Shown: positions 6,240 through 64,000 of the stretch, one piece after another
Position numbering within the stretch: position 1 is the stretch's first letter
How the letters are laid out: every line of letters begins with the position of its first letter
Assembly (NCBI GenBank): GCA_010909165.1
Contig: MU008159.1
Location: forward strand, 1,116,001 to 1,180,000
Direction: 5' to 3'
Source of the DNA: Anthoceros angustus
Lineage: Eukaryota; Plantae; Anthocerotophyta
DNA: 64,000 nt
Notes under the pieces: model-generated
Seen by the model: the letters and a program-made list of their open reading frames with translations, nothing else
Told to the model about the DNA's origin: nothing
Database searches by the model: none
Program-made: the position numbers and the translations under genes

Positions 6240-6905
6240 GAGCCAATCAGTGTTATCAAATTATTGCCACTTACTATTAAAGCTTACAAGAATATCACAA
6301 GAACCAATCCCTTATACAGCTCTAGCCTTATTCTTATTCTATGAGCTTATGAGAGCATTACTAGATCTATCCCAACCAATATTACTAACTTGTTGTCACT
6401 TATTCTTCCTTCCTTCGAGCTTATGAGAGCATCACCTGAACTAGTTCCTTCTACAGATATGCCCATTTTGTTCTTCAAAGCCTGTAAAAGCATCACTAGA
6501 ACTAGCCTCTTCTGCAGTTCTAACCTTATTCTTAAAGCTTATGAGAGCACAACTAGAACTAGCCTCTTCTACAACTCTAACCTTATTCTTAAAGCTTATC
6601 AAAGCATCACTAGATCTATGCCAACCACTATTATCAAATTGTTGGCAATTATTCTTAAAGCTTAGAGCCTATGAGGCCAACTGAACCAGAACTAGCCTCT
6701 TATGCAATTGTAACCTTATTCTTAAAGCTTATGATAGCATTACTAGTCTATGCCAACCAATATTACCAAATTGTGGGCACTTATTCTTAAAGCCTGTAAG
6801 AGCATCACCAGAACCAACCTCTTTTGCAGCTCTAGCCCTTTTCTTATTATTAGAGCTTATGAGAGTATTGATACAACTAGCCTCCTGTGCAGCTCTAACC
6901 TTATT
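6240..6905. repeat. Degenerate 57-bp tandem array within the Copia gag 3' region
   Basis: TAACCTTATTCTTAAAGCTTATGAGAGC-type units recur, for example at 6521 and 6578 (spacing 57). They are interspersed with CTAGATCTATGCCAACCAATATT variants. Confidence 0.8.
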
Positions 6906-8047
6906 TTCAAAACATAAGAAATCATGTGATTCGTTAGAAGTAGCCCCTTCCGCAGCTGTAATAGAAATCTTATTGAACGAAAACTTAAAGCAATCACAAG
7001 AACGTGATAGTGCTTCAAAAATATAAAAAATCTGCATATCAAGGGATATCTCCTGACCAACTGTCTTTAAATCATAAATAATATGGCAAAACTCATCAAT
7101 AAACTTCTTAATTGATTGCAAATGAAACATCTGAAATTGAACAAGCCGCGAAAATTCAAACTCGAGACTCTGTCAATGTTCTAAACTTTGCCACTCAAAA
7201 GTAGGCTGTATAGTTGCCCAAACCCCAGCAACAAACTTCTTTTCAAATATCTAACTGATACAATGGTGAACCTACAATTTGGATCAAATATTGTAGGTTC
7301 ACAAATTTTGGCTGAACCTACAAATTTTATTTGTAGGTTCAGCCAAAAAACAAATATGATCAAATTGTATCAGTGCAAACCTAAATAATATCCTAAAACT
7401 TTAAGTGTTCAACCAACACTTGAAAAAACCTTAAAAACCAATCCTCCCAGAGCACACTTCTTAGACATATCACAAAATGCGGGATAGAAGACCTGGTAAA
7501 TCTCAAAAGGAGAATCCCCGTGCTATATATATATATTAGGCATACCCTACAAACCCTCCAAACCCTAGTATTCTAGAAACCTTCTCATTTAACACAACCA
7601 ACATAAAGTTTAAATGTATCTTAGAAACATTAGCATCCGATACCATGTTACAATATCTAAGTTAGTCTTAAGTAAATTCGAATCACAAAAAGAGATTTAT
7701 AGCAAGAGCAATAACAAATATCATAGTAAGCCACTAAGCTCGCAAGAAAGGATACAACGAACTTAATCTTTAGAGGTCTTTATAAAGTGGAGAGAGCTAC
7801 CCTAACTAGGAATCTAATTCTGCTTAGCATCGACTTGAAAACTATACAACATAGAACAATATCATGTAATTGTAAATATAGATCCTCATATAATAGAATG
7901 TATCTAGAGTACAAATCCCAGAATCATTGTATCATAAAGCCCTTCAGGCCCCATAAGCTTTGATGTAAACTGAGTTCTCGAATTTCATGGAACCGACTCA
8001 TACTCAGCCTTTCTAGACTAAGGTTGTAGTGTCTTATTAATATTACA
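6240..8047 (-). mobile_element. Truncated Ty1/Copia LTR retrotransposon (5' LTR, PBS, gag remnant)
   Basis: On the minus strand a TGTAAT...TGTAACA segment (8047-7646) is followed directly by TGGTATCGGATGC, resembling the tRNA-iMet PBS TGGTATCAGAGC. ORF 7130-6729 (FIDEFCHIIYDLKTVGQEISLDMQIFYIFEALSRS) resembles the Copia gag (Retrotran_gag_2/UBN2) core. No pol is seen. Confidence 0.7.
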
Positions 8048-9989
8048 AGAGCAAAGTGTCTTCTCATCCCTTTCATCTGAAGAATATGTACATACTATCA
8101 ATCTAACTCGTTTTTAGCAACTTAGATTTTGGATGACAAATGTGCACTAACTCATTTTTAGCAATCTAGATTTTGAACAACAAATGTGCTATGTTGTACT
8201 CTTATAGTTTTTTTTTTCCAATCCTATATAAAAACACAAATAAGAAGTACAAATAGTATGCATAACAAAAAGAATATTTACTTAAATATCAACCCTACAT
8301 TCAAAAACAATTTTATGTAACAAGAAAAAAACAAAGCCAATTCTGTAATTTACGAGGTATTGTGAAAAGTTGTTCTCGCTTTTGGGTAAAGCAAACACAT
8401 CCCTTCACTTTGTTCTCTCTTTAGGGTAAAGCAAACACATCCCTTTACTAATACATCACAAATCTACGACACGGCCCGGCATCGCTGTTCAAGCTTTCTC
8501 ATCACTTTGTAAAGTAGTCTTGTACTACCTAACTTGGGATCTTTAATGATGATGCAGCTAGGCGGTTGGCAAGAGCTCTTCGGTCTTGATCTTCAGGCAC
8601 AGCTAGCACAAGGAGGAATAGGTGCATGAGAATGCAACTACCCAATGCAACTAATGCTCACACATGTGCCAATTTGACAACACCACTTGTAAACCAAACA
8701 CTCCTTCCAACGAGCTCATTGGTAGAAGATATGTATGAGGCAGGGAGATGAGAAAACTTCACACATTGATAAAACGTGATGAGAGGCTTCAACTCACACC
8801 AACGTGAGGAAGAAGAGCTGGCTAGTACTCTCCTCTTGACCAACATTCGCAACCCCTGGTTTTATGGTGCAGCTTCAGTGGGAGCATCATGGCTTGCTTG
8901 GATCACGAGGCTGATCCCTCCCATCAATCTTATCTTTCCTGAAAATCCCATATCATGAGGCGCACCAGTTGTATCGGGAGGAAGAAGAATCCTTTCCACG
9001 GAAAGAGAAAAATTCTTTCCGTTGTCCTCGTAGGTTTTTGAGACGACCTCAACTTGGAGTATCCTTCAATAGGAATAATAAAAGTACATTTGTAAAATGC
9101 TTACAATTCAGGGGAGAAATATTGCGTGTACAGGCGCCTCCCCCTATTCGATGTTCTGGCGGACTGCAGCGCACTTCTTCTGAAATAACTGCGTAGTGGG
9201 AGAACCTATTTCCGAAGGGGTGCTCCGCAACCTGTAATGTGTTGTGAAGAACAGGGGAGATGGCTTCTACCTTTCAAACGCACAAATTACAAACCCCAGG
9301 CCTGCGGAGGGTCCGGATGACTCACAGGAGGACGGGAAGAGCCACTGCGGAGTGTGCCGAGCAGCCATTTGTCTCCAGTTCTCAACCCGAATCCGTCAGC
9401 CAGGCCTCCGGATTCCACAATTCGCAACGCCCGCGAGCACCACAACCGTCCGGAGCACATACATCAAAGCGAACATCGTTGCTACGAGGGCAGGGAAGCT
9501 CCAGGCGGAAACACCTTGTAAGGAGCTGGGCAAGGGGGAAGAAAGCCAGGATAAGCAACCTGAGAGGAGCAGAGAAAGGAGCAAATCGTGTAGCATAGGA
9601 ACCTTGAAAATGCTAACAGGCTCCATAGCTCAACGCGAAGGCAGGGACGTCACGAGAGGCTAGTTCCTACCTCTGTCTCTGCCTCGGAGCGTGATAAGAC
9701 CAGGAGAGCGGATAAGCAGCCACATGTGGCCACCAACCAGGTCCATGTGTTCCAACCATTTGTTTGTGCGGAAGTGGTGAATAATCAAGCGCCATGGGCA
9801 GGCAACCTGCAACTTGCCTCTAATTCACCACCTCGTGTTCCCCGCCAGGGAACGCAGTGTGTCCCAAGCATATTTACACCTGACTGTAATTTTCCAGTAT
9901 GTTTGAGTAAAGAGAGCCGGTGGGAAACCCTAATCAGGGACACGGTTCCTCAGGCACACGCAAGCCAGCCATCAGTCCGTTCGATGCCG

Positions 9990-10910
9990 ATGGAGGCTGC
10001 TGTTGCTGAATCTCTGCTCTGTCAGCAGCTTTTGGACTGCAAGCTGCGTGTAAGCGAGAGGTTTCGAGCGCTCTTCTGTCTGCGGAATCGAAGGAGTTCT
10101 GAAGCCAGGGATGCCCTAATTCAAGCCTTGAGGGATTCTTCCAAGTTGCTAGCGCACGAGGCAGCTTTTGCTCTGGGGCAGATGCAGGATGAGACAGCCA
10201 TTCCAGCACTGAGAGAGGCGCTGCAGGATTGTGCCTCCTTTGATGCAATTGTCCGGCACGAGGCGGCAGAGGCGCTCGGGGCGATCGGGGCACCCGAATG
10301 TGTGGCTTTGCTGGAAGAAGCCCTGACCGGCGATCCTGATGTGGAAGTGAGGGAGACGTGCGAGCTGGCTTTGAGAAGGATACAGCAAAGTCGGCTCGGT
10401 AGTTCGGGTGAAGGAGAGGATGGTGCGGAAGTTTCACCCTTTCTGTCAGTCGACCCTGCGGCGCCAGCTCCCTCGACTTCGAGTGTGAGCGATCTGCAGG
10501 ATGTGCTGCTGGATGATGGGAGTGGCATGTATGAGCGGTACGCCGCACTGTTCGCTTTGAGGAACCGTGGGAGCCCGGAGGCTGTGAATGCAATTGTGGC
10601 TTCACTGGGGGCCAAAAGTGCTCTTTTGCGACACGAGGTGGCTTATGTGCTGGGACAGTTGCAGGATAAGTCAGCCACAGGTGCACTTGTGTCTGTCTTG
10701 AAGGACTCCACGGAACATCCCATGGTTCGTCATGAAGCAGCGGAAGCACTAGGTTCCATAGCCAATGAGCAGAGTGTCGCGCTGCTGAGGAGTTACCTGT
10801 TTGATCCAGAACAACTAGTCTCCCAAAGCTGTGAGGTGGCACTTGATATGCTGGAGCACGAGCTTCATGGTAAAGCTTTTGAGTATTTGTACCAGGTCAC
10901 ACCGAGTTAA
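9990..10910 (+). CDS. DOHH: Deoxyhypusine hydroxylase (HEAT-repeat di-iron enzyme), single coding exon
   Basis: [11 protein letters not shown], four His-Glu iron-ligand motifs (LAHEAA, VRHEAA, LRHEVA, VRHEAA), [31 protein letters not shown] and [13 protein letters not shown]. The start is ATG 9990 or 9984. Confidence 0.96.
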
Positions 10911-17939: not shown

Positions 17940-19090
17940 TCACCGGCGGCGGATACTGCGGGAGAGCCCAGGGTCCGAGGGACACTCAACCGCCATGTGC
18001 CCTCGACCACCACAGTTGTTACACACAACAACCTGCAGGCAATCCTTGCTCTTGTGGCCGGGGAGCTTGCAGTTCCGGCACACAATATCCACAAAAGCAG
18101 GCACAGCTGCTCCTCTTGTTGCACTGCCAAGTCTTGGGCAGTCACGGGCTATATGCCCAGCCTGGCTACACCCATTGCATACTGGGCTGTTAATGCAGTC
18201 TCGTGCCAGATGACCAGACTGGCGGCAGTTGTTACAAGCCTTCTCATTGGGACAATCCACTGAAACATGGCCAGGTCTGTAGCAGTTGTTGCAGAGCCTT
18301 GACTTTGGTAACCCTACTTCTTGGGCCGCACATCCTTTTGCAATGTGACCTGGCTTTCCACATACGTTGCACACAGGCTCATTATGGCATTCACTCGCAA
18401 TATGTCCAGGCTTCTTACAATTTCGGCACAGCGGCTCAGTGGGGCATGCTGCAGCAATATGCCTGTGGGACAACGCAATAGACAATCAGCACATGCAATG
18501 CCAAACTAATGAATGTAAGCAACAGACATCTACCTGCCCACTGCAAATCAGAGTCAAAAGGACGTAGTTCTACCCAGACAAACCACAGTTGTTGCAGACT
18601 GCTGCATTTGGGCAGTCCCTGGCGAAATGTCCAGACCTCCTGCAGTTGTTGCAGAGCTCCACAAGCGGCCTGCATAAAAGGAGAACCATGAGAGGAAGCC
18701 CGTGAGCGTCTGAGAGAAACAGAGGGCATGCAGGAGCCTTGGTAATGCTTGGAATCCTATGGAACCTATTCAACTTTTCACAAACCAACACAGCTGGAAC
18801 AATAACACACAACTAGTAGCATGCTAATGATAAAATATGCAGATCACAACATCGCAAGTCCAACAACAACGAGGTGTGCAAGTTAAACGGTACCTTCCAT
18901 TAGACCGAGGAAAACCACCACCGCCACCCCCACCACTACCACTTTTCTCCCTCGGAAACATCTTGTAAGGGGTACTCCGACGAAAGGCCCGTTTGCTGAC
19001 AATTCCACTTTGGATGCGACGACCAGAGCCTCGGGTCAGGTCATCCAGGCTCATACCGAGCTTAGCCTGAGTATCCAGGACAACCGACAT
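17940..19090 (-). CDS. GIS2/CNBP-like protein with 9 CCHC zinc knuckles and an ALY-like N-terminus; GC-rich copy
   Basis: Exons 19090-18894, 18669-18574 and 18462-17940 join in frame via GT-AG. There are nine CX2CX4HX4C knuckles. The N-terminus is MSVVLDTQAKLGMSLDDL...RRSTPY. A long 5' UTR intron is likely at about 20353-19113. Confidence 0.93.
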
Positions 19091-20701
19091 CCAGCCTGCT
19101 CTATAGAGGCACCTTAAATAAGTTATCAGGTGACGTGCCCTGCGTTAACCCTGATGGAATGCTTTATCCCAGAGAGGTAGAACGGTTGAATACGTCCTGA
19201 CTAAAGATTCATCCAAACTGTGCACAGCTGTCAAGTTTCTCCTCCCTTCTTCCTCCAAACCCAACAAGGCACGTCACCTCCACCTCCTTCTTCAGCCCTT
19301 CACCCTCCTCCGCTCTCCTCCTCCGTTCTCCCACAACCGATTCTCTAAGAACTACAGCAAATCCCTTTACACAGAATGGTGACTCCAACATTATGACCCA
19401 AGACATGTGTGTACTACAGTCATTCAGAAAAAGTACGCAGTAAAATGGCGCAGCCACACTTGAGAAATGGAAACGACCTACTACAGGCAACACAAGGCTA
19501 CCAACATCAGTTATAACCACATCTGCAGTGCCAGCTGCCATTCCGGCATGCAACCTAGTTTTTCACGACAAAATATATGTTAACAGCAACTCCTACATGA
19601 GGAAAGCAAAGAGTCATCCTATCTGCAAGTGCTGCAGATAGAAATACGCACCTAGATCTTGAACGAAGCGTGCACGCGGCCTATGTGAGGCACAAGGGCT
19701 ATTTCACCTGCAAAGACTTGAGCCCAGCAACCAGTCAGTATCGCAGCCAGAGCGGACCAATATACGACACTGCACGAGGGGACAAGGTCTAGCGGTGGCA
19801 TCAGGTACAGCAGGAAGCACGGAGTAGGAACATCAATCTAGCCAAGGACCTCAAATCCCCACTAACACCCAAGACACGTAAGTCAACACGATTACATGTG
19901 TCCCAGAGCTGGACATCAAAAACATCGGACTGAGCTCCGCATTCCGTCAAAAGCACGGATAACATAGAACCAAGAAACTAACCACGTTGAAGACAGTAAA
20001 GGAACAGATTCCAAATCCAAAGGCTGAGAGGAGGTGGAAATAGGGCAGACACAAGCTGCTAAGCATCAGTTCCCGCTAAGAAATAACGAGCTGGATAGCG
20101 ATAGGATAGTAGGAGATGGAAACCATTCACATTCCAACAGAGAATCAAGGAGTGGGTGGGGGGTGGCGAGGGGAGGGGGTGGCGATGCACAGAACCCTAG
20201 GTCGCGCAAGAGTGTACCATCCCAACAAGAGTCAAATGCGGCATCATTCGAGAGGACAACGGGAAGGGATAAGCCCCAAAGGTAGGGAGAGGAGATGGCT
20301 CTGGAGCACCAAGTAGAAGTAAGACAAAGCGGAGCACTCCAAGGTATGGAATACCTTACAAGTTAGGCACCCCAGCGTTGGAGCTGAGAGTCAGCAACAG
20401 CAGGTCTCACAAGGGAAGCGCTCGATTCCGCGAGCTGAACACCGCAAACTCCAAAGCGCTGAATCTCGCAGCTGATACCCCCGACGCCGCCGGGCCACTC
20501 CCTGACTGCGTACCAACACAAACCACACGGAAGACTAGGTAGGTTGTTTTTATTGCAGGAATTCCGTTCACATACAGACACAGGTATGTAGGTATAGGTA
20601 CCCAATTTTTAAATTGAGCTGGTGAGTTCTTAAATTACTATTTTTCCAAAAAGTGGTGCACTGCTGACTGTTCCGTTATCGAGAGCTGGGGCTGGCCTAT
20701 C

Positions 20702-22383
20702 TAGAGTATCCGGGCCACATCCCGGCAACTTAACCCTGGACCGGCATGTGAGGTTGTGACATTCGTACCTCAACAATTCATAGCCGCTTCTTTCTGTTTC
20801 TTCCGGTTTTCTGAGGTGTTTATTAGGTGGCAAAGACCACTAGGCATGCATGCATTAATGACCATTGATCACAAATTGAACTTGAATTTCACGTCCAGTG
20901 TTTGTCTCGCTGGACCCTCTCTCCCAAAGCTCAAGGCAACCTCTAATGTTGGGCTTATTTTCACACTTCACAATGTGTCTCACTTGTGGGTACTTCTCCC
21001 GCTAGACTCTCTCTCGTACTTGCCTGCGTGCAAATCCGAGATTAGTCTCATTCCATGCTTGGCTGGCTACTCGAAAGCCATTTGAGATGAGCCACAACAT
21101 AAACAAGACTTGGAGCCTGAATATGAAGAGGAATTGGAGCCGAGACATGAAGAGCAATTGAAGCCTATACAAGAAGAGGAATTGGAGCGTGCACATGAAT
21201 AGGATTGGGAGCCTGAGGCATTTCATAATGCCTCTATTGAATTTGATGGTGCAATAGAATTGCCGCTACAGTTGTCACACGGAAACATGGATGAAATGCA
21301 TACAGATGGACAATGTGTAGGAGTGGAGGCTCATGGTGGCCCTAGCATTACATTGCACATGTGGATGAAAAGCAAGCATTCCAAGCAGTGATGCCATCGC
21401 ACTAGGTGGGCGCATCACATAGGGCTTTTAACACGAAAGATTGACGGAGGCAGCCATGTTGCAGATATCATGTGCTTGCCTACCATGGAGAAGCTTCTCG
21501 TTGACAACTCTAAGAAGAAGAAGTCCTTTGCACATTCCCAGCTTGTAACAGTAGATGAGTGGATCACAGCAGAGGTAAGGAGGAAGGAGGAAAAGGCTGC
21601 TTTGTTAGAGGAGAAACAAAAGAGGAAGCAAACTCGTATCCAGGAAAGATTGAGGAAGGAAGAGGTTGAAGCTGAGTGGAGAAACGAAAACCCGTGGCCA
21701 ATTCCAAGCAAGGCCGAGAAGAAACTAGCTATGGCAAGGTGGAAATTTGAAGCAAGGAGGAGTCACATGCTATTCTAGCCAACAGAGCTCCAACAAATTT
21801 GCATGGAGTGAATCTCTATCCTAGAGAGCCTGCAATCTTATGCTAAGCCATCAAGCATACCAATAGAGAAATAGTGCCTTGCAAGACTGGCAAATCTGCA
21901 GCACATGAGAAAACTAATAGTCCTATAGCACTTGATGTTCTCCATGGCAACCATAGCAAATTTTGGGTTGCATTATGGAGTGTGTGTGGTGGTATGATGG
22001 ATGCCTTGTCACGGTCATGGAGCTCGCGAATCAAAAAGGCCAATGCACGCCGAAGTGTGGAGAGTTCGTTTGCATGGAGCTCGCGAATCAAAAAGGCCAA
22101 TGCACGCCGAAGTGTGGAGAGTTCGTTTGCATGTGAGAGCCTAAACGCTAGATTGGCGACATGGGTGGCGCTCAAGGTGCCGACAAGTGGAGCCAAAGAG
22201 CGTTTTCTTTGAAACCTCATGTTTCATAATTATTACATTTATGATATACTATAAAAATTAAAGATGCCAGTACTACATATTATGGTGAACCTAATTATAA
22301 TTATTTTATAATATTTTGAATTTATTTTCTATATATCAATTATTTATGACCTTAACTTGCTGGGATATGGTCAGGGTACTCTA
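20702..22383. mobile_element. Non-autonomous Tc1/mariner-pogo-like DNA transposon (imperfect ~30-bp TIRs, TA target site)
   Basis: TA-GAGTATCCGGGCCACATCCCGGCAACTTAA (20702-20733) is an imperfect inverted repeat of TTAACTTGCTGGGATATGGTCAGGGTACTC-TA (22352-22383). Internal ORF remnant 21470-21778 (SQLVTVDEWITAEVRRKEEKAALLEEKQKRKQ) resembles the charged C-terminal region of pogo-like transposases. It has internal 24-bp (~21100-21215) and 57-bp (~22017-22130) tandem duplications. Confidence 0.72.
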
Positions 22384-22859
22384 CCAACTTCCAAAAACAA
22401 TTGCTCACAGCCTTGTGGGGGGTAGGATTGATGAGTCCAGACCTATTAGTTGATATAGCCATTCAGTGCTTAAAACTTATTTTTTATTTAGTTAAAAAAC
22501 ATAAAAATTATTACACTGAATGCCTAAGTTTAGAGAAATTGGATATGGCATAAACATGGAGAGGGATGTATACAAATTTCTATTTTCTTTAATAAAAAAC
22601 TAAATTACAAGTAGATTCTTTTCCATTACCTAATTAAAATATTCAAACCTTGTTTGCTTAATGGCCTACCAATAAACAATTAAGGGATTCAACACAACGG
22701 TGCCTCATAGTTGTATCAATTGCTGTACTTGATGTAGAGAATTTAGTTTTAATGGTTGGTTTAAAAGGTTAGTTATTTTTATTATATTAATAATATGATA
22801 AACTTTTTAAATTTATATGATGAAGAGAAAAGTCTTGTCATTTAGCAAATTAGATGATG

Positions 22860-23937
22860 TCAACGTCGCATTCCTCGTGCTAACATAGGGTCTGAGGGAC
22901 ATTCTACTGCCATATGACCTCGACCTCCACAATTGTTGCATATAACAACTTGCAAGCAATCCTTACTTTTGTGCCCAGGAAGTTTGCAATTTCGACAAAC
23001 GATATCAGCAAACCCTGACACAATTGGTCCTCTTGGTGCGTTAATATTTGGGCAATCTCGAGCAATATGTCCAGTTTGACTGCATCCATTACAAACTGGA
23101 TCATTTGTACAATCACGTGCCAAATGTCCAGGTTGACGGCAATTGTTACAGGCTTTCTCATTAGGGCAATCCATTGATACATGCCCAGGTCGATAACAAT
23201 TATTACAAAGCCTTGATTTTGGTAATCCCATTTCTTGGGATGCACACCCTTTTGCAATATGACCTGATTTTCCACACATATTGCATACTGGTTCATTGTG
23301 GCATTCACTTGCAATGTGCCCCGGCTTCTTACAGTTTCTACATAGGGGCTCCGTTGGGCATACTGCTGCAATGTGTCTAGAAGAGTAGATGCAAATGCAC
23401 AATTTAGTATGAGTCAATAGATATATATAATTATATAATACATTTTAATAATAAAAAATAATATGTAAATAAAATTTGTAAGACCATACCCCGAGACACC
23501 ACAGTTATTGCATACTGCAGCGTTAGGGCAATCTCTTGCAAAATGACCGGTTCGTCGACAATTGTTACATAGTTCTAAAAGGGGTCTACAAGACATGATA
23601 AATGAGTTAGTAGAAAACCAACAAAAGGAAATAATCATGGAGATCTTGAAAACATGAAATTGAATTAAAAAAGAGAGAAAAACAATAATTATGTTCCATT
23701 TATTCAAGTTGTAAGCATGATGTCTAAAATTTTTTTGTGGTATAAAGGGCATGGATACCTGGAAGATCTATTGAAGCCACCGCCTGTCTTCTCTCTTGAA
23801 AATATTTTGTAGGGTGCACTTCGTCTAGAACCTCGTTTACTTACTACACCACTTTGCATTCGACGATTGGAGCCTCGAGAAGCAAGATCGTCGAGACTCA
23901 TGGTAAGCTTTGCCTGTGTGTTTAGGACATCCGACAT
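22860..23937 (-). CDS. GIS2/CNBP-like protein with 9 CCHC zinc knuckles and an ALY-like N-terminus; AT-rich paralog
   Basis: Exons 23937-23759, 23585-23490 and 23376-22860 have the same intron positions and phases as 17940-19090. The ORF is intact. The N-terminus is MSDVLNTQAKLTMSLDDL...RRSAPY. Confidence 0.92.
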
Positions 23938-25554
23938 CCAACCAAATTTCTAAACTCCCACTCAAAGTCAAAGAGATGAAGAATTACTATTGAAATATGT
24001 TTTTCTTCATGAAAGAAACTCCTCAAAAATTATTGAATCTCTGAGAATAAGTCATCTCATTCCTTTATCATAGTATTTGACATCAACCTTGAACGTTGTG
24101 GGATTTTCTATCTCCTCTCCTTTATATATATATGCATAAACACATGCACTCATTCGCAATATGATACACGTGTTTCTTCTCAATGACTTCTCCAATCTTT
24201 CAACTTCCCACCTATAAGTTTGTATCCCACAAAGATAGAAAATTAGGGTAAGAAGCTCGTAAAACCATGCATTGACACTACGATCTTGGAATTTAGTCAT
24301 TTCTTCTGAAATTTGGGTTATATTTTTGAATTTAACCCAATAGATATAACACATAATGAAAAACATTGTTCAAGCCTCCCAATGAGCTCAAAATGGACAA
24401 AATATGAATTGTCGCTTCATTATCTCTTGATTGTCTTCATTTCCTATTTCTTTTTTCTAACAAAATACTAAATTTGGATCCTGTTAATTGCTAGAATGAC
24501 ATTGTCTATCATATAAGTTTCCAATTTAAAAAAACTGCATCTCTTGACTTCTTCATAACTTGATATCACCCATCACTCCCCAACAACAAACTTCTAGCAA
24601 TCTTTTACTCTTCTACACCAGTCACAATCTTGCACATCATTTTCACAACAATCCACATCTTTATTTCCTTGTCAATTCACATACCTCTCCTCTCCTCTTC
24701 TCCATTCCTTTCTCTTCTCCTCTGTTGAATTTTAGAATAGAGTCACTGTATTATCTACCAAGAAATACTGAGATAATTTAGGATGTTTGTTAAAATTATG
24801 AATTGAGTTGCATACCAATGAAGATAAGATAGTGACACAAACCGTGGCCAATATCCAAAGGAAACCCTAACTGTTTTCTTGAATTGTAACTTACATAAGA
24901 AAACCTTAGATGTCTAATGAGTTAATGAACTATGGTAATACTTTGTTCATAATATATATACATATAGGTATGTATAATTTTAAATTATATTAATGAAAAA
25001 TAGCACCATACACAAGTAATTTCCAAGTTTTATACCGCAATTGTATGTCGAGAATACAACATACTTAAGTAGAACTTGTAACCACTTGTTATGCTTAATG
25101 AGAGAGAAGAGATGGGCTCACTCCGTCTCTCCTCTCTCCATAAAAATTGTGACCACTTGGTACAATGACACAATATTGGCTGGGAGGGACATCTCAAACT
25201 CATCCAAATATAAATATACTCTATGATAGGAATGCATAAAAATGTTTCATACTATGATTCCATATATCATTGTAAAAGTTGAACTACATAAAAAGATGCC
25301 CCACAAGATTGGTTCTATCTTTTATGTGCAACTCTTATAATTATTACTCTTATGTGTAACATGCAAGGCCTATAAGATGAGGGCCTTATATGTTATATAT
25401 TTTTATTTATAAGATATATTATAATATATAAAAATAGTTATGAATATAGGAAGGTATATAAGAATGGTGGCTACGGTTATACCACCCTAAGGAATTTATT
25501 TGTAAGCGGTGGACATGGATGATAGATGGGCGTTTGTTAGAGAATCGCCGGATG

Positions 25555-32500: not shown

Positions 32501-32661
32501 CATGAACATGAAGTGGAGCAATCAAATTCTTTCTTTCCAAAATGACCTTGACAATCCTAGGCTTTGAAGGCGAATCAACTTGAAGTTCCCACCGTCTTAG
32601 TGTGCAACAATGGTCTTCAGTTGGGAACATAATGGCATCTAGGCTGGTGGTGAGACTGATT

Positions 32662-32833
32662 GGAAAAGAACAGATCAAGGCTTTGCTCTATTGAGTCTTT
32701 ACTGACCGTACGCTGAGTGCGGTGGAAAAGAACAGATCAAGGCTTTGCTCTATTGAGTCTTTACTTTTCGAATTACACGACAGTGCAGTGGAAAAGAACA
32801 GCATCCAAGGCTTTGCTCTATTGAGTCTTTACT
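32662..32833. repeat. Three near-tandem copies of a ~42-bp unit (GGAAAAGAACAGATCAAGGCTTTGCTCTATTGAGTCTTTACT)
   Basis: Copies at ~32662, ~32724 and ~32790 are separated by short, partly related spacers. Confidence 0.9.
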
Positions 32834-33094
32834 TTCGACCAGAATTGCAACATAGGGTGTGTGAGCAATATGCTTGCCTGCCGCATAAATCTCTAGGTCA
32901 ATTGTTGTGCTGGCTCACTGAACTGTGATCAGTCTTGAGTGCGGGCGCCCAATTCTGTTGCTCGAGCCTCGAGGGATACTTCACATCGTCAAGGATGGGT
33001 CCAATTTTGTCACATGACGAGAAACTCATACCTCCTCCATTTGAATGTGTGAGCTAACATCGTGAAGGATGGGGAAAATTGTGTCGGCGGAGGA

Positions 33095-33218
33095 GAACCT
33101 AATACCTCGTCCGTTAGAAGAAGAAGAACCTAATACCTCGTCTGTTAGAAGAAGAAGAACCTAATACCTCGTCCGTTAGAAGAAGAAGAACCTAATACCT
33201 CGTCCGTTAGAAGAAGAA
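33095..33218. repeat. 31-bp minisatellite x4 (GAACCTAATACCTCGTCCGTTAGAAGAAGAA)
   Basis: Four near-perfect tandem copies. Confidence 0.95.
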
Positions 33219-33294
33219 GCTTATTGAATGAAGTCCACTAAGGACGGAAATTTTTCGTCATGGGACTTGGTACTTAACAAGTAGGATCCCAAGT

Positions 33295-33425
33295 AAGTAC
33301 CAACTAGGATCGATCCCAGGAAAGTACCAACTAGGATCGATCCTAGGTAAGTACCAACTAGGATCGATCCTAGGTAAGTACCAACTAGGATCGATCCCAG
33401 GTAAGTACCAACTAGGATCCCAGGA
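33295..33425. repeat. 27-bp minisatellite x4.5 with a palindromic core (AAGTACCAACTAGGATCGATCCTAGGT)
   Basis: Tandem copies start at 33295, 33322, 33349, 33376 and 33403. The core CTAGGATCGATCCTAG is a perfect 16-bp palindrome in two copies. Confidence 0.93.
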
Positions 33426-33969: not shown

Positions 33970-34574
33970 ATAAGTTATCTTAAATATTAAAGGAAGATTA
34001 TTTTTCTAATCCCGTTATTGAAGAAGAAGAAAGATTTGAAGTACTCATATGATTCTTGTTCTTACACTAGTGTTATATTATGATTCCATAGTCTTCATAT
34101 TTGTGAGCTATATATGTTCCTTACAAAAAAGAAACGTGCACACTTTATGTAAAAAAAGAGATGAAATATCACATCTACCACGAAAAGCAGATTCCGGCTT
34201 CTTGCCTGCCTTTCGTGGCTTTCTGTGTCTGCCTATTGTAGCTCTTGTGAATCTTAGGGTAGTTTACTGCCCTATCTAATGCTTATGCTTCTCGTGTTGG
34301 ACATGTTTTGTAGTTCTTACTTACATAATTTTTATTTTTCTCTAAAAAATATATTCATATTTCTTACGTAGTTTAACACTTTCCTAGGAGAAGAATACGA
34401 GGTAGATTGAAAGCTTCTTAGTTAAGAATCTCTCTTTAGCCTACAGCCTCTCCCAACCTTGGCTGGTCGAGAAGCTAGAACATAAATACCGCACCGTAAA
34501 CACCATTCACCATTGGCTGGTCAGGAAGGGTATATACACATATCTGACTTGAAGAAAGGTAGTAAGACTTCGCG

Positions 34575-34822
34575 GTATGTGGAGCGGTGCGTGCGCAGTG
34601 TGCGATGTACGGAGCGTTGTGGTGTGCAGTGTGCGGAGCAATGCGGTACGGTGTGCGGTGTGTGGTGTGCGGTGTGCGCTGTGCGGTGTGCGCTGTGCGC
34701 TGTGCGCTGTGCGGTGTGCGTTGCGGTGTGTGGTGTGCGGATCGGTGCGGTGTGTAGTGTGCGGAGCGTTGCGGTATATGATGTGTGGTGTGCGGAGCGG
34801 TGCGGTGCGGTGTGCAGTGCCA
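34575..34822. repeat. Low-complexity (TGCGG/TGTGCGC) simple repeat tract
   Basis: About 250 bp of degenerate GTGTGCGGT/TGTGCGC units. Confidence 0.9.
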
Positions 34823-39137: not shown

Positions 39138-40277
39138 CCCTCCACCAAGCGTACTGCCGACTCCAATTCTTACACCAACTTTACCCGATCCAACAATTGC
39201 GAACTCCCCCAAAATCAATCTATGAAATTCCTCCTGGTTCACGATCCCTCCTGTACTGTAGGTCGATTCCCAGACGATTCCCGTACCGCAGGTTGCGGCA
39301 AACAACAGCGCACATGGAAATCCGCAGACCGGACAGACCAAACCCTAAACTACTAATTACAACGGACCGGCTTTTGCATAGCAGGGAACAAACAAACAGG
39401 AGCACTGGCAAGTTCCGTTTAGGGCAGGAGGAGCCAGGGGGGGAACCTGCTGTTTTTTAATCATTGTCCTTGAGTTACAGTAATAAGCACTGCCTAGACT
39501 AGTGTGTAGTGGAAGAACTCTTGCTGCACAGGGTTCCCACCAACTGGGATGTACTTGTGTACCCGGATGTTTCCCACATGCAGAGCAGGAGTCTGCTGGC
39601 TCAACTGATTTGTGCAGCTCTTAAACCCAAGCCGATTAAGTACTGTCCTCTTTGCTGAAGAAGCATCACGGCAATGTGATGCCCTGGCCATTCAGTGTAA
39701 CACAGATCACCAGTGGTGCATGTGCTCCCAGAATTTTGACCATTTCTAGGCAAGGAGCCAGTGTCCGGCTCCGTTACACATGCCTTCCAGTTTGTGGGCG
39801 GCATCCGAGGGAGTCTGAATATGGTCCGAGTTTGGGTGGAGTGCGGGACGGACAGTCACGGGGCAGTGGTAGACGGAAGTCCCCAACTGCCTCCACTTCA
39901 CACTTGGCTGCAAAACGCTTGCTTCTCCAAAGTGGGGTACTAAGATCGCTGTCCACCATGCCCGATGGTGGTGTCTGTGGAGACGTCTCTTGGGTTCAGT
40001 CCCTAGTGCTGCACGGTCCAGGCCACCTGGCGAAGCTGACATGTCCCTAGACACCTTCCTGCTCGACCTGGATGCTATAAGAGGTGCGAGATTGCAAGCT
40101 AAAAGGCAGAGTCTCAATTAGATTCTTCCTCAGCAGCTTGCATAGTATCTGGAGTTGCTTGACAGCATCCATGGCCTGATCCGAGTTTGCTGTGAATTTC
40201 CCTCGCCCTGCATTGTGCATTCCCAGTCAGGCTAGCTGTTGTTTGGTGTTGCATCATTTGAAGCTTGTGGGTTGAGA

Positions 40278-41078
40278 ATGAAGTGCTTCGGTATGAAGGG
40301 TGGTGTGAAACTGCTGCTCATTGCATGTCTGCTGGGCATTGCATGGGCCTCGGTGGTCTGTGCCTCCTACGAGGAGGCAGCAACCAAGGCTGCAAAGTCG
40401 ACTGCGGCAGGGTCACTGAAAGTGGTTCGTGAGCTGAGCGCAGAGGAGGGATCGCAGAAATGGAGCTACGACTACAAGTCTCCTCCTCCTCCTCACTACA
40501 ATCACAGGAAGCTGTCCCCTCCCTACTACTGGCGGGGCTCTTCCCCCCCATACTATGGCGGGCATGGCGACCATCATGATCACGGCGATCACGGTTACAA
40601 CAAGAACCACCACAAGGAGCATGACCACAACAGCGAGCACGGACATGATCACAACAAGGAGCACGATCATCACAACTACGACCATGATCACAACAAGGGG
40701 CATGATCACAACAAGGAACACGACCACAACAAGGAGCACGATCACAACAAGGAGCATGATCACAGCAGCTACGGCCATGCCCACAACAAGGGGCACGATC
40801 ACAACAAGGAACACGACCACAACAAGGAGCACGACCACAAGAAAGAGCATGATCACAACAAGGAGCACAATCACGAGAAGGAACATCACCACAAGGGGCA
40901 CCCTTACTACAAGTCTCCTCCGAACTACCATTACAAGTCTCCTCCGACCTACCACTACAAATCGCCTCCGACCTACCACTACAAATCTCCTCCAACTTAC
41001 CACTATCAATCTCCTCCAGCCTACCACTACTCATCCCCGCCGCCCCCTCGGTCCTACTACGACTCTCCTCCATACTAA
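40278..41078 (+). CDS. Secreted histidine-rich extensin-like cell-wall protein
   Basis: Signal peptide (KLLLIACLLGIAWASVVCAS), YKSPPPP, a ~115-aa His-rich (DHNKEH)n domain and a C-terminal (YHYKSPP)n/SPPPP region. TATAA at ~40076. Probable 3' UTR intron at 41091-41200. Confidence 0.88.
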   Translation: MKCFGMKGGVKLLLIACLLGIAWASVVCASYEEAATKAAKSTAAGSLKVVRELSAEEGSQKWSYDYKSPPPPHYNHRKLSPPYYWRGSSPPYYGGHGDHHDHGDHGYNKNHHKEHDHNSEHGHDHNKEHDHHNYDHDHNKGHDHNKEHDHNKEHDHNKEHDHSSYGHAHNKGHDHNKEHDHNKEHDHKKEHDHNKEHNHEKEHHHKGHPYYKSPPNYHYKSPPTYHYKSPPTYHYKSPPTYHYQSPPAYHYSSPPPPRSYYDSPPY

Positions 41079-42188
41079 GTCTCCATTCAGGTACCTCTAA
41101 GAGCTGTTCACAAATTCAAATTGTCACAAGACAGTTCCCTTGGCATTTCTGAACTTCATCGAGTTGCTGTCTGAAGCATGCAATTATTTTCTCCATGCAG
41201 GACCTCAAACAGCTGGAGCGGAGGTCTCAGGGGGGCTGGATGTCCAATAATGCATCAAGAACAACAAGTCCGCTGTGTGCGTGGAGTCCAATAAGTTCCA
41301 GGATTTTAGTATTACCCATACGCGTGGCAACGGAGCCAACGCCTTCTTCACATTGTGCTCCTGTGCAGATACTAGTACCAAATAATGCAGGCGCGGAGTC
41401 TTATGGGAGGCAACTCACACACATGGTATTCAGCAGCGTCGTGTGTGAGTTGGTAGACTGGTCATGAGTGGTTTGTTTTAGCAGATATCAGAGCACTCTG
41501 TGGAGAGCTGTAAACCTCTGTATGTGTTATCTACTCTAAATGTCAAGCTTTCTTTGTTGAAAAGGCAAGCGCCACCTTTGAATTGCTCAAAACGTGACAC
41601 TTCCCCTGACTCAGTAGAGGCATGGCTGGGGACTGGTCTGATGGGCTTACGTGACGCCTTACAAACGATCCCGCGAGAATTCCTTTATTGCAATCTTGCC
41701 ACCAAAGGGCAAGAATGATGTTGGACTCCACTCTTGGCCCCAACAAGACGTACAAAGTTCCAGAGAGTAGTGTAGACTACCATAAGAGCGATCAGGAGCG
41801 CTGCTGCTCCTGAAAACGCCAATCCGTCTCCTGAAGGCTACTAGTATTTAGTACTCAGAGCTCTTCAAAGTTCAAAATACATAGATCAAATAAGACTAGG
41901 TAGGATGTCTGCATCCGCATGAGAGTTTATTGTCCAGGGATGACGTTGGTCCCTGATCCTGATCCTGATCCTGATCCTCCTCCGCCTGCAAGGCCGTTTC
42001 TGAGGCGGATCGGGCTGTCCATCTTTCATATCGTATCTGCAGGGAAATTCCACTAAACATTCGCATCAGCGCGAACTCGCATCCGAAGCCATCAGGCGGG
42101 AGACGATCGTGCCCGAGGCCTGTACCTTGCCTGTAGTCGTCGGACGCTCCTTCAATTCGGATTTCGACATTCATAAATTGGGGGAGCT

Positions 42189-43155
42189 TCAGTACCCGGG
42201 AGGAGTGTAATACTGGTAAGGAGGTGTCTTGTAAACCGGGGACTTGTAGACGGGAGACTTGTAGACCGGGGACTTGTAAACGGGGGACTTGTAAACGGGG
42301 GACTTGTAAACGGGGGACTTGTAAACGGGGGACTTGTAAACGGGGGACTTGTAAACGGGGGACTTGTAAACGGGGGACTTGTGAACCGGGGACTTGTAAA
42401 CGGGGGACTTGTGAACAGGGGACTTGTAAATCGGGGACTTGTAGACCGGGGACTTGTAGATCGGGGACTTGTATACGGGGGACTTGTATACGGGGGACTT
42501 GTATACAGGGGACTTGTAGATCGGGGACTTGTAAACCGGAGACTCGTAGACGGGAGGGGGCGGCGACCGATACACGGGAGGCGGTGGGGACTCGTAGACG
42601 GAGGCGGGGGACGCATACACGGAGGGGAGGCGGCGACGCACACACGGGAGGCGGTGAGGACTCGTAGACGACAGGAGGCGGGGGACGCATACACGGGAGG
42701 GTGGCGACTCATACACGGGCGGGGCGGCGACTCATACACAGGAGGGGCGAGGCGACTCATACACGGGCGGGGGCGACGCATACACGGAGGGGAGGCGACT
42801 CATACACACGGGAGGGTGGCGACTCATACACGGGCGGGGCGGCGGCTCACACGGGCGGGGCGGCGACTCATACACGGGCGGGGCGGCGACTCATACACGG
42901 GAGGAGGGAAGAGTAGGAGTATGTATCGGGAGGAGGGGACTCATCGTAGAAGGGGAAGGGAGGGAACTCCCAGCCGGGGAATTTCTTGGAGCCGAACTGT
43001 TGCTGATCAGGGCTTGCGAGAACCCGCCTGCCAGGCAGCTGCCGGGCTTGGCTGCCAGGCGCGGTGGACAGAGCTGCAGCCAGGAGGGCCGCGCACAGCA
43101 TCAGCCTCCATCTGCCGGACGCGGGCTCGGAAGGCCTTGGTGCGCGCATCTCCAT
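42189..43155 (-). CDS. Extensin/proline-rich cell-wall protein with YESPPPPV and (YKSPV)n repeats; frameshifted in this sequence
   Basis: Signal peptide (WRLMLCAALLAAALSTAPGSQA), RRVL, YDESPPP and YESPPPPVY repeats, and about 20 YKSPV/I pentapeptides from a 15-bp repeat. The frame shifts several times in C-runs at ~42600-42910. Probable 3' UTR intron at 42125-42037. Confidence 0.8.
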
Positions 43156-44205
43156 GAGCTCAGGCAGGCAGGCAGGTGGTAGTCGTTTCAAGAGCGAATG
43201 CCGAATTGGCTCAGGGGAGCTCATATAGGGATGGATGCTGAGGAGCGGCCACCTCCAATTCTGCCTGCTCCTCTGCTTGCGTAACGGCTTTGTACCTTTT
43301 CCCCTGCCTTGCCTCCGCTGGCGCTGCGCATGGCCAGTAGGTGATGGCAGCCTGCGAGCCGTGATCCGCAGTAAATGCGGGGTAAGCAGGATTGCTGTTG
43401 AGCTTTGCGATTTGGAGAGTGTCATCGCTGGACTGTCATGATGGAGAGGGGCTGGAGAGGGGCCTTTGTGACATTTAGGTCGGAGATTGGGGGTAAGCAG
43501 GCTCTGCCGGGATTGCTTGAGGAAGGTCGGCGGAGGTGGAGAGGACAAGGCTACTGCCACCAGCTCCATTATTCTTCACATGGTGCCTCAAATGCTTGCG
43601 GGAAGTGTGAGTACAGGTACCGGATGTAGGCCAGCCAACAGACTCACGCTCGGGTCCACTTTGACCACAGAAGCCAGGCCTTCAGGGAAAAAGCTGCAAT
43701 GCTGCATTGAATTCATGCCGGCGGCAAGCACCTGGAGAATGTACATACGTATGTGTGAGTGGCACGGTTTGCACAGCTGTGGGAACGGGGGGGCCTCTTC
43801 TCAATGAATGCAGTTGGTGTGCTGTCCTTCAGGAGAGGAATGGTCATCTGCTGCGTCCATTGATTGTGGCAGAAATAAGGGAAATTGTTGTCCGTGAATG
43901 TGCTGCCTCTCTCACTACTTTACCGGCTGATTGGCGGGAAGGTCAAGGAGAACCTGCTGGATAATTCAGAGTCCCGAAGAGCACCGCTGCGGAATCCAAG
44001 GTGTTGAACAGTCTGCTTATGGTTTCCAGTTGGCAGCACACGTGTTTACCCCGCTGCCGTTTACGTGTAAACAACGGTCAGACGATGCCCGCCTGACACC
44101 AATTTATTTTCCCGAGTTTCATGGCTTAAAACTGTCGAGATCCGTCACAACGTCGGCTGCGTTTTGGGCATTTCTTCGGCAAACGCATCTCTCGGATTCC
44201 CCCCA

Positions 44206-57898: not shown

Positions 57899-58644
57899 AT
57901 GTATGGCACTAAAATCTTCAAAGCATTCGTCATCGTCAAAATCCGGGTCCTTCAAGAGGAGAGATGATTCCACCTCATCCCACAACTCTTCAACGCCATG
58001 TCTGACATGAGTGTGGTATACCCTCAGAGAATATTAATATGCGCTCCGAGAATATTAATGTCTCTTTGCGGTGATGTCTTCTGTACTAACGCGTGGAGGT
58101 CACCAGCCCTCTTGTCTGATCATTTTTTTGGACTTCTGATCCACGATTAGGACTGCTGATGCTTGGAGCAGAATCAGAAATATGGAGCAGGGCAGACTCC
58201 TCAGTCCCAATGCTGGACAAGTTCACTGGTCATTTGCCGAAGAAGCACGGAAGCACGGAAAAGGAGGACAGTCAGCCCTGCTCCCCTTCGAACGGGGAAA
58301 CGTCACACGTATGTGAAAAATACACTCGAATTGGCCACACAGGTTTGCGTGAATCTTGCCACCAGTCAGCCCAACGTCGATGGACTCAAGTCTCGGATGG
58401 TCGGCAGATAATGAAACGGAACTGAGCCAGTCAAACATATTTGACTCCAGGCTTCAAGCTAAAGTGATGAATATAATGGATGTTTCTTGTGGGGGAGGGG
58501 AGCGAAAGATCAAGATAAGCTCTCTGTCAAAGAGATTTTGTCAGATGGAGGCTTAGGCAAGGTGCGAAGTGCAAGAGAAGCTCTCTTTGTCGGAGTGGTT
58601 TGCCTATGAGTTTCGGAGTACATGACAAATAGGTCTCAGGCACG

Positions 58645-58775
58645 TTCTCAATTTTGTAGAGGCATTAGAGGCACCGGAGGGATTCTTAGGGTTCTCAATT
58701 TTGTAGAGGCACTGGAGGGATTCTTAGGGTTCTCAATTTTGTAGAGGCATTAGAAGCACTGAAGGGATTCTTAGG
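58645..58775. repeat. Tandem repeat x3 (TTCTCAATTTTGTAGAGGCA...GGGATTCTTAGG), unit ~38-48 bp
   Basis: Three copies; the middle one is internally deleted. Confidence 0.85.
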
Positions 58776-58794
58776 TACCAACTTGAGATAAGCA

Positions 58795-59430
58795 TGTTTG
58801 ATGAGCCATCTGAGAAGAGAATGCTTAATGAACCATTTATTCTGATATGAGAATATTTGATATGGCTCATCAAACATTCTGACATGAGAATATTTGATGA
58901 GAATATTTGATGAGCCATATAAGGAGGAGGGTGTATGCTACGATGTTTGATGAGCCATACAAGGAGGAGGGTGGCGATGTTTGATGAGCCATACAAGGAG
59001 GATGAGCCATACAAGGAGGATGAGCCATACAAGGAGGAGGGTGGTGATGTTTGATGAGCCATACAAGGAGGAGGGTGGTGATGTTTGATGAGCCATACAA
59101 GGAGGAGGGTGTCTGCTGCGATTCCGACTATGAGCCATACAAGGAGGAGGGTATCCGACTATGAGCCATACAAGGAGGAGGTATTTGCTGCAATTCCGAC
59201 TATAAGCCATACAAGGAGGAGGGTATTTGCTGCAATTCCGACTATAAGCCATACAAGGAGGAGGGTGTCTGCTGCGTGCGATTCCGACTATAATGGCTAC
59301 GCAATATCAAAGAGAAGAAACAAATATCTTTTGCGATTCTGATTATAAGCCATACGAGGAGGAGAGTGTCTGCTGCGATTCCGACTATAATGGCTACGCA
59401 ATATCAAAGAGAAGGAACAAATATCTTTTT
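58795..59430. repeat. Composite minisatellite built on a GAGCCATACAAGGAGGAGG core
   Basis: More than 10 core copies with changing flanks: GATGTTTGAT at the left end, GCTGCGATTCCGACTAT at the right end. Confidence 0.9.
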
Positions 59431-61066: not shown

Positions 61067-64000
61067 ATGATAGAAGTACAAACAATAGTAAGATACTTGA
61101 AAGAGAATCCATTGAATTATTCAATGTCTCTTACGGAATTCAGGTATGTAAATATGTATGTGATTCTTGAGGTTTCAAAATTTATGAAACTTACTGAACA
61201 ATCTTTGATATGACCTCTTGCAGCCAAAAAACGCCCGAGGAATTGCGAGAAATACTATGCAATGTGCTCAGCATAATTCAATCAAACCAGGTAATATAAA
61301 AAATATTCATATTCAAGATAAAATTTTATGTCGATGTGTAGCTCAATATTTATCTTGATTTTTCAGAAATTAAATTTAGATTTATGTAAAGAAGAAACAA
61401 CAACAGAATGGATAGTAGAATTTCTCCAAATTCTTAATTATCAACCTCCTCATGATAGGTATAAAATATTCAGTATCTTTGTAACTCATAAAATATTTGA
61501 GGGTTATAGATGTCGTGCTTTACAAAAATATACTTTTCGGTGCAGCATTCCATATAGACAAGGGCTTGCATATGGTAGCCCAGAAGTGATTTACCCATTA
61601 CTGTCTTGGATGCTTCCACAAGTATGACAATTACAACTTAAATAATGGTTTGTCTATTTAAGTTACAAAAAATCTAGAGTACAGTATATCCATAAGATTA
61701 TGATAAGATCTAAACATATATATTTGTAATGCAGATTAACAAGTTGAAAAAACGTGTTTACTTAGCACGGTTTTTAGTAGATATGGATATCCCAACTGAA
61801 TATCTTTTGGAAGAAGATATTAATGTCCTACATACTGAATATAATACACTACGAGAGCATTTTAAAAGTCAGCATTGTTATTTAGAAAACCTTGGACAAA
61901 TGGAAGAAGATCCATCTGAATTCAAAAAGCTTTTGCAAAATCTACAAGCAGAACGTGATCACCTTGATTCTAAGGCTTTAAAAATCAGAGCAAAGCTTCA
62001 GGTATAGTTCCATGTTCACTAAATTATATAACTGAATAGTTAGCGTAAAAAAATTGTATTAAACTTTGACATATGGATGTCCAATCGCAGTTATGATTGC
62101 CCCTTGTTTCCAGCGCAAGTTCGAAGATGATGAGAAGCTTGATTCATTGTTGCAATCTATTTCATTGCTCACATTCTATTCAAAGGAAGAAGAGGACTTA
62201 AGTAAATCTTTACTAGAAGAAGAAAGGAAGATGGAGGGAATTTCAGGTAAAATATTATTTTTATGTCTCATATTTGGTGATATATTGTGATATACTCTTA
62301 AAAATTAAAATATTTTCATTCATCAGACCGTCCTCCAAAACTTGCAAAACATCTCAAAGACCTTGAGGCGTTTAGCTCTCTATCAACAGACGGAGTTATA
62401 GAGATATTGGCTAAAGACATAGAGGCTCTTCGATTTTCTCATCAAAGATTGAAAGTGGTAAGAGAATATATATTTCATATGACATATGTTAATAAAATGA
62501 CTTCCTTTATGTAATTTTGTAGAAACTTACCCCATAATTTTGCCTTAATATAGGATATACAAGAGAAACGTGCACAGCTAAAACCTATTGAAGATATTGA
62601 AAAGGATAACTCAAAGTTATCACACAATCCTCTCTATGTTCCGGTATGTGTTAAGATGAAGATGAAATTTTATTAAAACATAAAATTTATTAATCCTCTC
62701 ATTTAATATTTGATAAAGAAAACATAATATTTGTTACTAAGTAGGAATGCAAGTTAATATACCTATTATGCATGTGTGTAGACTAAATTATTTGCAACAC
62801 ATGAGAACATTCAATTATCAAACATTAATCAAACTGGGTATTGCAAAGATCAACCCAAGCAAAAGAAAAATGCATTAAATTGGCAAAATGATCAAATAGG
62901 TGCAATAGTTACACATAAGTTGCAATCAGCTCATAAAAATCTTGCAACATTGATTGCTACCAAAGAAAGCTTTGAAAAGGAGTTTGAACAAAGTACTAGT
63001 TCTATAAGAGAGGTGATATATGTTATAAATTATTGCATAGATGTTGATCATTCACATATATGAGTTCCATATATAAGAGAACAAAGAGTTACAGGTATTC
63101 TTTGTTATAGGTACAAGTAACAATACGTAGAGGGAAAGATTTGAAGGATTATGTTGATACTTTGCGAAACAAAGGCATTTTATACAAAGAAATGAAGACC
63201 AAAATTGATGATCTGACAATTGAGCATGGCCTCTTGTTTAGATCATTGCAAATATTGGAAAGAGAAGCTAGAAACTTACGAATGGGTATGACAACTTAAG
63301 TGGATGTACACTTTTCTATTTGATTTGAAAGATTGTATCTAAACAATGGACTTCATGAAAATGTCAACAGAAAATAATGGAAGTCGATCGGAGTCCATAG
63401 ATTTATTCAAGTCTATATCAGAAGTTTCTACAATAATCAAATTTTGTCAAGATCGTTTAGCACCCAAAATGAATATGTTACAAAAATTACAATTACTATT
63501 AAGACAAAGACACATTGAACAAGTTTCAACAGTTCATGCTCAAAAAGAGCTTTCACTTGCGGCCGAAAGGTATTTGAATTTCAAGAACTTTGAAAAAGAG
63601 GTTAACTTACTATTATATATCAAAGTTTAAGGAAAAAATTATTGTACACTCTTAGATATAAATATTCGTGTATATATGTAGGAAACATACACAAGCTGAA
63701 ACAGAAGTGTCAATGAGACATAAAGAGCTTAACAAAGAGAAACAAGTTTACCAAGAGTTATGCTCAAATGTCAAATGTCTTCAAATGTGTATTGAAGACT
63801 GTAAGAATCTAGCTTGTTCGAATTGATTTTAGATCATCGTAGCATGAATCTATGAGTTCCTGTTGACCGAAATCTTATTTTCCATATTCTGCAGTAGAAA
63901 AAATAAAAATAGGGACAAACTCCAATATATTACGACAAACACAATTGCAACAACACGAGGAGTTGGCTTGTAACTTATATCGAAGGCAACAAAATTTACA
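61067..64000 (+). CDS. IFT81: Intraflagellar transport protein 81 (IFT-B), multi-exon, 3' end beyond the window
   Basis: MIEVQTIVRYLKENPLNYSMSLTEF, FLQILNYQPP, YRQGLAYGSPEVIYPLLSWML and KLKKRVYLARFLVDMDIPTEYL match the IFT81 CH domain and following coiled coil. A later exon gives RGKDLKDYVDTLRNKGILYKEMKTKIDDLTIEHGLLFRSLQIL. Exons and introns are AT-rich. Confidence 0.9.

Follow-up and report, generated by a model that had tools for sequence, protein, structure and literature searches.

Transposable element (TE)-like methylation of a duplicated gene is usually read as a step towards its death as a pseudogene. Two adjacent genes of the hornwort Anthoceros angustus raise the question of whether a duplicate can live long under such a regime and still keep its protein. 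One copy of this pair, B, seems to join a methylation footprint with strong protein conservation, over a time long enough to saturate its silent sites. We analysed the pair within a 64,000-nucleotide stretch of contig MU008159.1 (the window), following up an earlier note which had described two tandem genes encoding nearly the same protein in opposite base compositions.

Results

The window, compact plant DNA with a GC content of about 50%, carries PPR, kinase and extensin genes and contains four AT-rich islands (near 6-9, 22-25.5, 32-37 and 59-64 kb). Degenerate tandem-repeat patches lie at island edges (6240-6930, 32660-33420, 34570-34820 and 58640-59400). Other genes seen include an intronless HEAT-repeat gene at 9726-10910, by eye like deoxyhypusine hydroxylase, and extensin-like and His-rich repeat genes at 40239-43157 (SPPP/YKSP and HDHNK repeats). 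The two genes of interest, A and B (Table 1), lie head-to-tail on the minus strand with no gene between them. Their coding regions are 3.8 kb apart, in agreement with the single orientation and spacing of about 4 kb given before, and the transcript of A begins near 20507, inside the gap. The gene models confirm that the two copies share both coding-intron positions and phases, all introns being GT-AG, and the 14-mers quoted earlier as corresponding to each other are found at 18282 and 23196. The proteins, of 271 (A) and 263 (B) amino acids, are identical at 220 of 262 positions (84%), so the description of a nearly identical product was apt. Each has nine CX2CX4HX4C knuckles, all intact, and the full gene model of B is open throughout, with no stop or frameshift in the coding frame.

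Table 1. Features of the window, with positions counted from its first nucleotide
Feature	Position	Strand	Description
Gene A	17940-19090	minus	GIS2/CNBP-like, nine CCHC knuckles
Gene A coding exon 3	17940..18462	-	seven knuckles and stop; Pfam zf-CCHC E 9e-35; RNA contig of run X2 identical
Gene A coding exon 2	18574..18669	-	knuckle 1 and most of knuckle 2; RNA joints
Gene A coding exon 1	18894..19090	-	ATG, LxMSLDDL motif, Arg/Gly-rich linker
Gene A 5' leader	19091..20507	-	two introns; RNA contig joints in run X2
Decayed multi-copy element	20702..22381	.	imperfect terminal inverted repeats of ~32 bp; between B 3' end and A promoter
AT-rich, CHG/CG-poor island with gene B inside	22200..25500	.	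GC 0.27-0.41
Gene B	22860-23937	minus	GIS2/CNBP-like, nine CCHC knuckles
Gene B coding exon 3	22860..23376	-	seven knuckles and stop; zf-CCHC E 2e-34; in contig 24 of DNA run X8
Gene B coding exon 2	23490..23585	-	GT-AG ends and equivalence to gene A exon 2
Gene B coding exon 1	23759..23937	-	on DNA contigs of runs X1 and X8
Gene B introns	23377-23489, 23586-23758	-	splicing predicted from GT-AG ends and equivalence to A
TATA-like run	24120..24135	-	~190 nt upstream of the ATG of B; weak, as chance runs are common in AT-rich DNA
IFT81-like gene, first 11 exons	61067..63600	+	523 codons, no stop; runs off window end (64000)

In protein databases the best relatives of A and B are plant GIS2/CNBP-like proteins and not retroelement Gag. 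The closest are moss-like, with 73-77% identity; Chara and Ginkgo homologs reach about 60%, and the names given to the matches are GIS2-like or cellular nucleic acid-binding protein. Exon-by-exon queries of these databases returned no hornwort ortholog of either copy. A and B resemble the GIS2/CNBP/HEXBP-like plant proteins in the nine-knuckle CCHC array, and both intron positions recur in a moss-like gene. The A/B protein is thus an ordinary member of the family, which by family membership would be expected to bind single-stranded RNA or DNA; the difference from the rest of the family lies in there being two adjacent copies. Both copies begin with an LxMSLDDL motif (19052-19075 in A, 23902-23925 in B), which is also present in a moss-like mRNA and in Chara, and absent from the seed-plant and fern matches scanned. 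Since the moss-like mRNA opens with the same N-terminal motif, the start codons of A and B are confirmed. We take the motif to resemble the UAP56-binding motif of ALY/REF-type export adaptors; searches of Pfam and PDB with exon 1 gave no match.

A is the expressed copy. Contigs from RNA run X2 are identical to A, with both coding introns and two leader introns spliced out. The joint upstream of exon 3 lies at 18461/18573, and the two coding joints skip 111 and 224 nt. One leader intron spans 19650 to about 19364 or 19476, where it has alternative acceptors, and the other 19717-20359. The 5'-most RNA base is 20507, a contig end that cannot fix the true start site. Among the contigs of X2 none derives from B; with a single run, for which no tissue is recorded, general silence of B does not follow.

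The join between the genes, which the earlier note had relied on, is very probably genuine, because the contigs of DNA run X8, labelled as another species, include A with its leader and show both genes in the same order, A-spacer-B. Records 22 and 24 of this run abut at 20477-20494; the latter, from 20477 on, crosses a 427-nt spacer and takes in B completely, differing by 90 substitutions and 24 gap letters over 1189 nt. No single contig spans the whole A-B stretch. A further DNA run, X1, which has the same label as RNA run X2, covers B at 23582-23937 with 3 substitutions and 11 gap letters. Its contigs cover exons 1 and 2 of B and no coverage is listed for exon 3, although coverage holes prove nothing. 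X1 is filed as the same sample as X2, which matches the window across A. Relative to the window, X1 has a Pro-to-Leu change at 18667 in A, and a Gly-to-Asn change at 23783-23784 (codon 52) and a silent change at 23824 in B.

About 1.7 kb of the gap between A and B is an insertion missing from the second species, in which 20704-22748 is replaced by the 427 nt. The inserted element has high contig depth in other species and gave no significant Pfam match over 20702-22381, and we recognised no target-site duplication at it. Within it, 57 bp are duplicated exactly in tandem (22016-22129), and there are repeats of 24 bp. The element can be dismissed as the cause of the state of B, since B is present in the second species and the element is not. 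That B was captured inside a transposon is likewise unsupported, as B lies outside the inverted repeats.

The pair is real, ancient and conserved. Synonymous divergence between A and B is so high (pS 0.85) that the Nei-Gojobori dS is undefined, and a codon model was therefore used. It gave dS of about 2.2, which is only rough because composition is not stationary, dN of 0.096 and omega of about 0.044, with omega=1 rejected (2dL=282). Identity at fourfold sites is 0.32 vs 0.25 expected by chance, the copies are alike at 73 of 170 third positions (72 and 81 of 170 against the moss-like gene), and of their differences 11, 3 and 58 are at codon positions 1, 2 and 3. Neither the introns nor the flanks of A align with those of B, which speaks against a recent duplication or gene conversion and leads us to reject both. 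The proteins of A and B are each other's closest (216/256 vs 197 and 190), and quartet site patterns favour A+B (7:2:3, 5:1:0 and 3:0:2). An A+B clade has support of 81/88 in one tree and is unresolved in two, and is not rejected by the AU test (p=0.34). With five outgroups, derived residues are about equally many on the two branches; with the full-length moss-like sequence there are 14 in B vs 7 in A. In a neutral simulation B stayed free of stops with a probability of 0.08 when divergence was 5%, and of 0.003 when it was 10%. B thus has none of the marks of a pseudogene (stops, frameshifts, lost splice sites, dN/dS near 1), and the proposed purifying selection on it is borne out by the low omega, the intact knuckles and the similar protein rates on both branches.

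The description of the two compositions as opposite overstates the case. B is AT-rich, with GC3 of 0.29, and A is not unusually GC-rich: its GC3 of 0.52 fits the 0.49-0.57 of four neighbouring genes, making B the compositional outlier. The difference extends to introns (GC of 0.44/0.44 in A vs 0.28/0.20 in B), while GC1 and GC2 differ little (0.57/0.56 vs 0.51/0.53). Synonymous changes from S in A to W in B number 87, vs 25 in the reverse direction (p=3e-9). Compared with moss-like outgroups, the derived changes in A are mostly W>S (24 vs 5; 31 vs 6) and the polarised changes in B run towards AT, both being descriptive only, given the saturation. It seems that GC rose in A and fell in B. Because of the saturation, the apparent GC gain of A and the difference in expression, the pair makes a poor control for the effect of chromatin on a gene, the use that had been suggested for it.

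We then scored third positions with a synonymous C/T or G/A choice by the methylation context of a C on either strand. Retention of C/G in the CHG context is 42/60 (0.70) in A vs 7/51 (0.14) in B (p=1e-9), and in the CHH context 81/129 (0.63) vs 49/128 (0.38) (p=1e-4). The odds ratio is 13.6 for CHG vs 2.7 for CHH, and the CHG drop exceeds the CHH drop (interaction p=0.003). Four neighbouring genes, four outgroup homologs and the moss-like mRNA have no CHG deficit (CHG is close to CHH), indicating that the deficit is derived in B. The two introns of B contain no CG and no CHG. By contrast, CG at codon positions 1-2 is kept (16 in B vs 17 in A), and B has 12 CGA codons, each one transition from a stop, yet no stop. 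Deamination of methylated cytosine, filtered by selection, would produce such a pattern. Of the losses expected under the mechanism put forward earlier, CHG/CG methylation with deamination, the CHG-specific one is therefore supported and the CG one is not, as retention at CG is 13/76 (0.17) in A vs 11/72 (0.15) in B; silent-site CG loss is common to both copies, and hence does not discriminate between them. There is also the shift at CHH, a drop that CHG methylation does not explain. Since CHH retention falls too, context-free AT drift acts as well and methylation alone is not enough. The footprint of B fits long-term TE-like methylation plus general AT drift, and we consider the methylation reading on balance probable. 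A short homolog fragment on a peat metagenome contig (L012) has CHG 3/12 vs CHH 20/28, a tiny sample with intron sequence included.

The same synonymous signature is found in a second gene of the window, in another AT-rich island. This IFT81-like gene has GC3 of 0.27 and retention of 0.10 at CG, 0.16 at CHG and 0.34 at CHH, matching B. Three successive exons of its model have weak Pfam IFT81_CH matches, ordered as in the model; when one exon was used to look for homologs, nothing was found. Across the window, CWG observed/expected is 0.72 in AT-rich 1-kb bins vs 1.42 in GC-rich ones, i.e. half.

Discussion

We hold with moderate confidence that B is a functional, stage-restricted, methylated paralog from an ancient local duplication. 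A single GIS2/CNBP-like RNA-binding gene would have been duplicated locally, long ago. Copy A would have remained in ordinary genic chromatin, expressed, and drifted towards GC, while B would long have lain in a small heterochromatin-like island, its body probably CG and CHG methylated for most of the life cycle. Deamination of methylated cytosines would have stripped C/G wherever the protein permitted, CHG hardest, and a weaker context-free AT drift, from a lack of GC-biased conversion or codon selection or from some CHH methylation, would have added to it. Since selection still preserves its protein, B is probably expressed at some restricted stage, with sperm formation the leading candidate at somewhat less than an even chance, the sporophyte or spore a less probable one and any other stage the least probable.

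Could the composition of B have arisen without methylation? A low-recombination, rarely transcribed patch lacking GC-biased conversion, codon selection and transcription-coupled repair might have relaxed to AT equilibrium while A was pushed to GC, and the AT-richness of the entire island, the drop at CHH and the mostly W>S changes of A would agree. Such processes, however, are not expected to single out CHG, where the drop is greater than at CHH, nor do they sit well with the halving of CWG in AT-rich bins. As the full account we find this improbable; methylation-free AT relaxation probably contributes but cannot be the whole cause. It is similarly improbable that B, long functional, is now silenced and dying, for example by methylation spreading from neighbouring repeats. 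In B silent CHG is almost completely lost while constrained CG and CHG survive, which argues that methylation and selection were long concurrent, and neutral decay would have made stops within about 5% divergence. The element adjoins the 3' end of B, as this scenario would like, but the second species has B without the element. The missing B contig in X2, the codon 52 change and uncovered exon 3 in X1, and the slight excess of derived residues in B with one outgroup speak for a dying gene, as does the fact that TE-like methylated angiosperm paralogs are usually young and relaxed (PMC10400039).

Still less probable is that B is foreign, either transferred horizontally from another plant or an out-paralog older than the hornwort-moss split, and has kept a foreign composition. 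The trees support A+B weakly, and at third positions the two copies resemble each other no more than either resembles the moss-like gene; but the head-to-tail adjacency points to local duplication, the proteins are mutually closest with quartets favouring A+B, and the IFT81-like gene has the same signature, which is thus not special to B. That the pair is an assembly artefact, whether the join is chimeric or long reads were miscalled at methylated CWG sites, is largely refuted already and has a negligible probability. In its favour is the lack of a contig across the whole stretch, whereas contigs of the other species pass A, spacer and B in the same order and X1 differs by just three substitutions where it covers B. 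The skew of differences towards third codon positions is impossible from miscalls and, together with the order in X8, makes both forms of artefact very unlikely.

Preferring, then, a functional methylated paralog, we may ask when it is used. In land plants, cilia are found in sperm only, and the sharing of the signature of B by one IFT81-like gene 37 kb away suggests that B may be a sperm-stage copy. A speculative extension, which we think rather unlikely, is that in the hornwort plant body part of the sperm programme is kept locked by TE-like CHG methylation, and has been for so long that silent sites were rewritten; this part would comprise ciliary genes such as IFT81 and duplicated housekeeping genes specific to sperm, B among them. 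If this were true, a synonymous CHG deficit would amount to a fossil methylome, from which genes of reproductive cells could be predicted with nothing but sequence, and the gating of a male programme by methylation, known from pollen, would be as old as plants whose sperm swim. As the signature is common to B and the IFT81-like gene, existing hornwort genomes and methylomes allow a cheap genome-wide test of whether heterochromatic methylation gates sperm or sporophyte genes in bryophytes in the way it gates the pollen genes of flowering plants.

In the literature searched, with the pan-hornwort genome paper outside its scope, we found neither the pair described before nor a CHG footprint reported for genes of hornworts. 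Related systems are known. In Anthoceros agrestis the marks H3K9me1/H3K27me1, along with CG and CHG methylation, are found on 14.3% of genes, and 9.3% of this set turn on in the sporophyte (PMC10952607). Genes of its cluster-P2 are silent in the thallus and near repeats (about 60% overlap TEs), some are on in another stage, and paralogs of housekeeping genes are included (PMC10952607). The passages of that source drawn on here report neither a long-term sequence footprint nor ciliary genes in cluster-P2, and no CCHC or ciliary gene was found in the published P2 sporophyte list (PMC10952607); B would be a candidate for such a cluster. Methylated pollen genes of maize, targets of DNA glycosylases, are functional, have TE-like methylation, are silent in the plant body and act in the male gametophyte, and they offer a model for B and the IFT81-like gene with their predicted methylation (PMC11436724). 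Those genes, however, are mostly intronless and related to the cell wall, and their demethylation has been demonstrated (PMC11436724), whereas B has introns, encodes an RNA-binding protein and is a putative case of methylation. Among angiosperm tandem pairs about 18% differ in methylation class (teM vs unM), and teM goes with tissue-specific expression (PMC10400039); judged by its footprint, B appears to work like a teM gene. Angiosperm teM paralogs tend to be young and to have higher Ka/Ks (PMC10400039), in contrast to the saturated A/B pair with dS of about 2.2 and omega of about 0.04. What the hornwort pair adds to these systems is its age, the strength of the constraint and a footprint in common with a ciliary gene.
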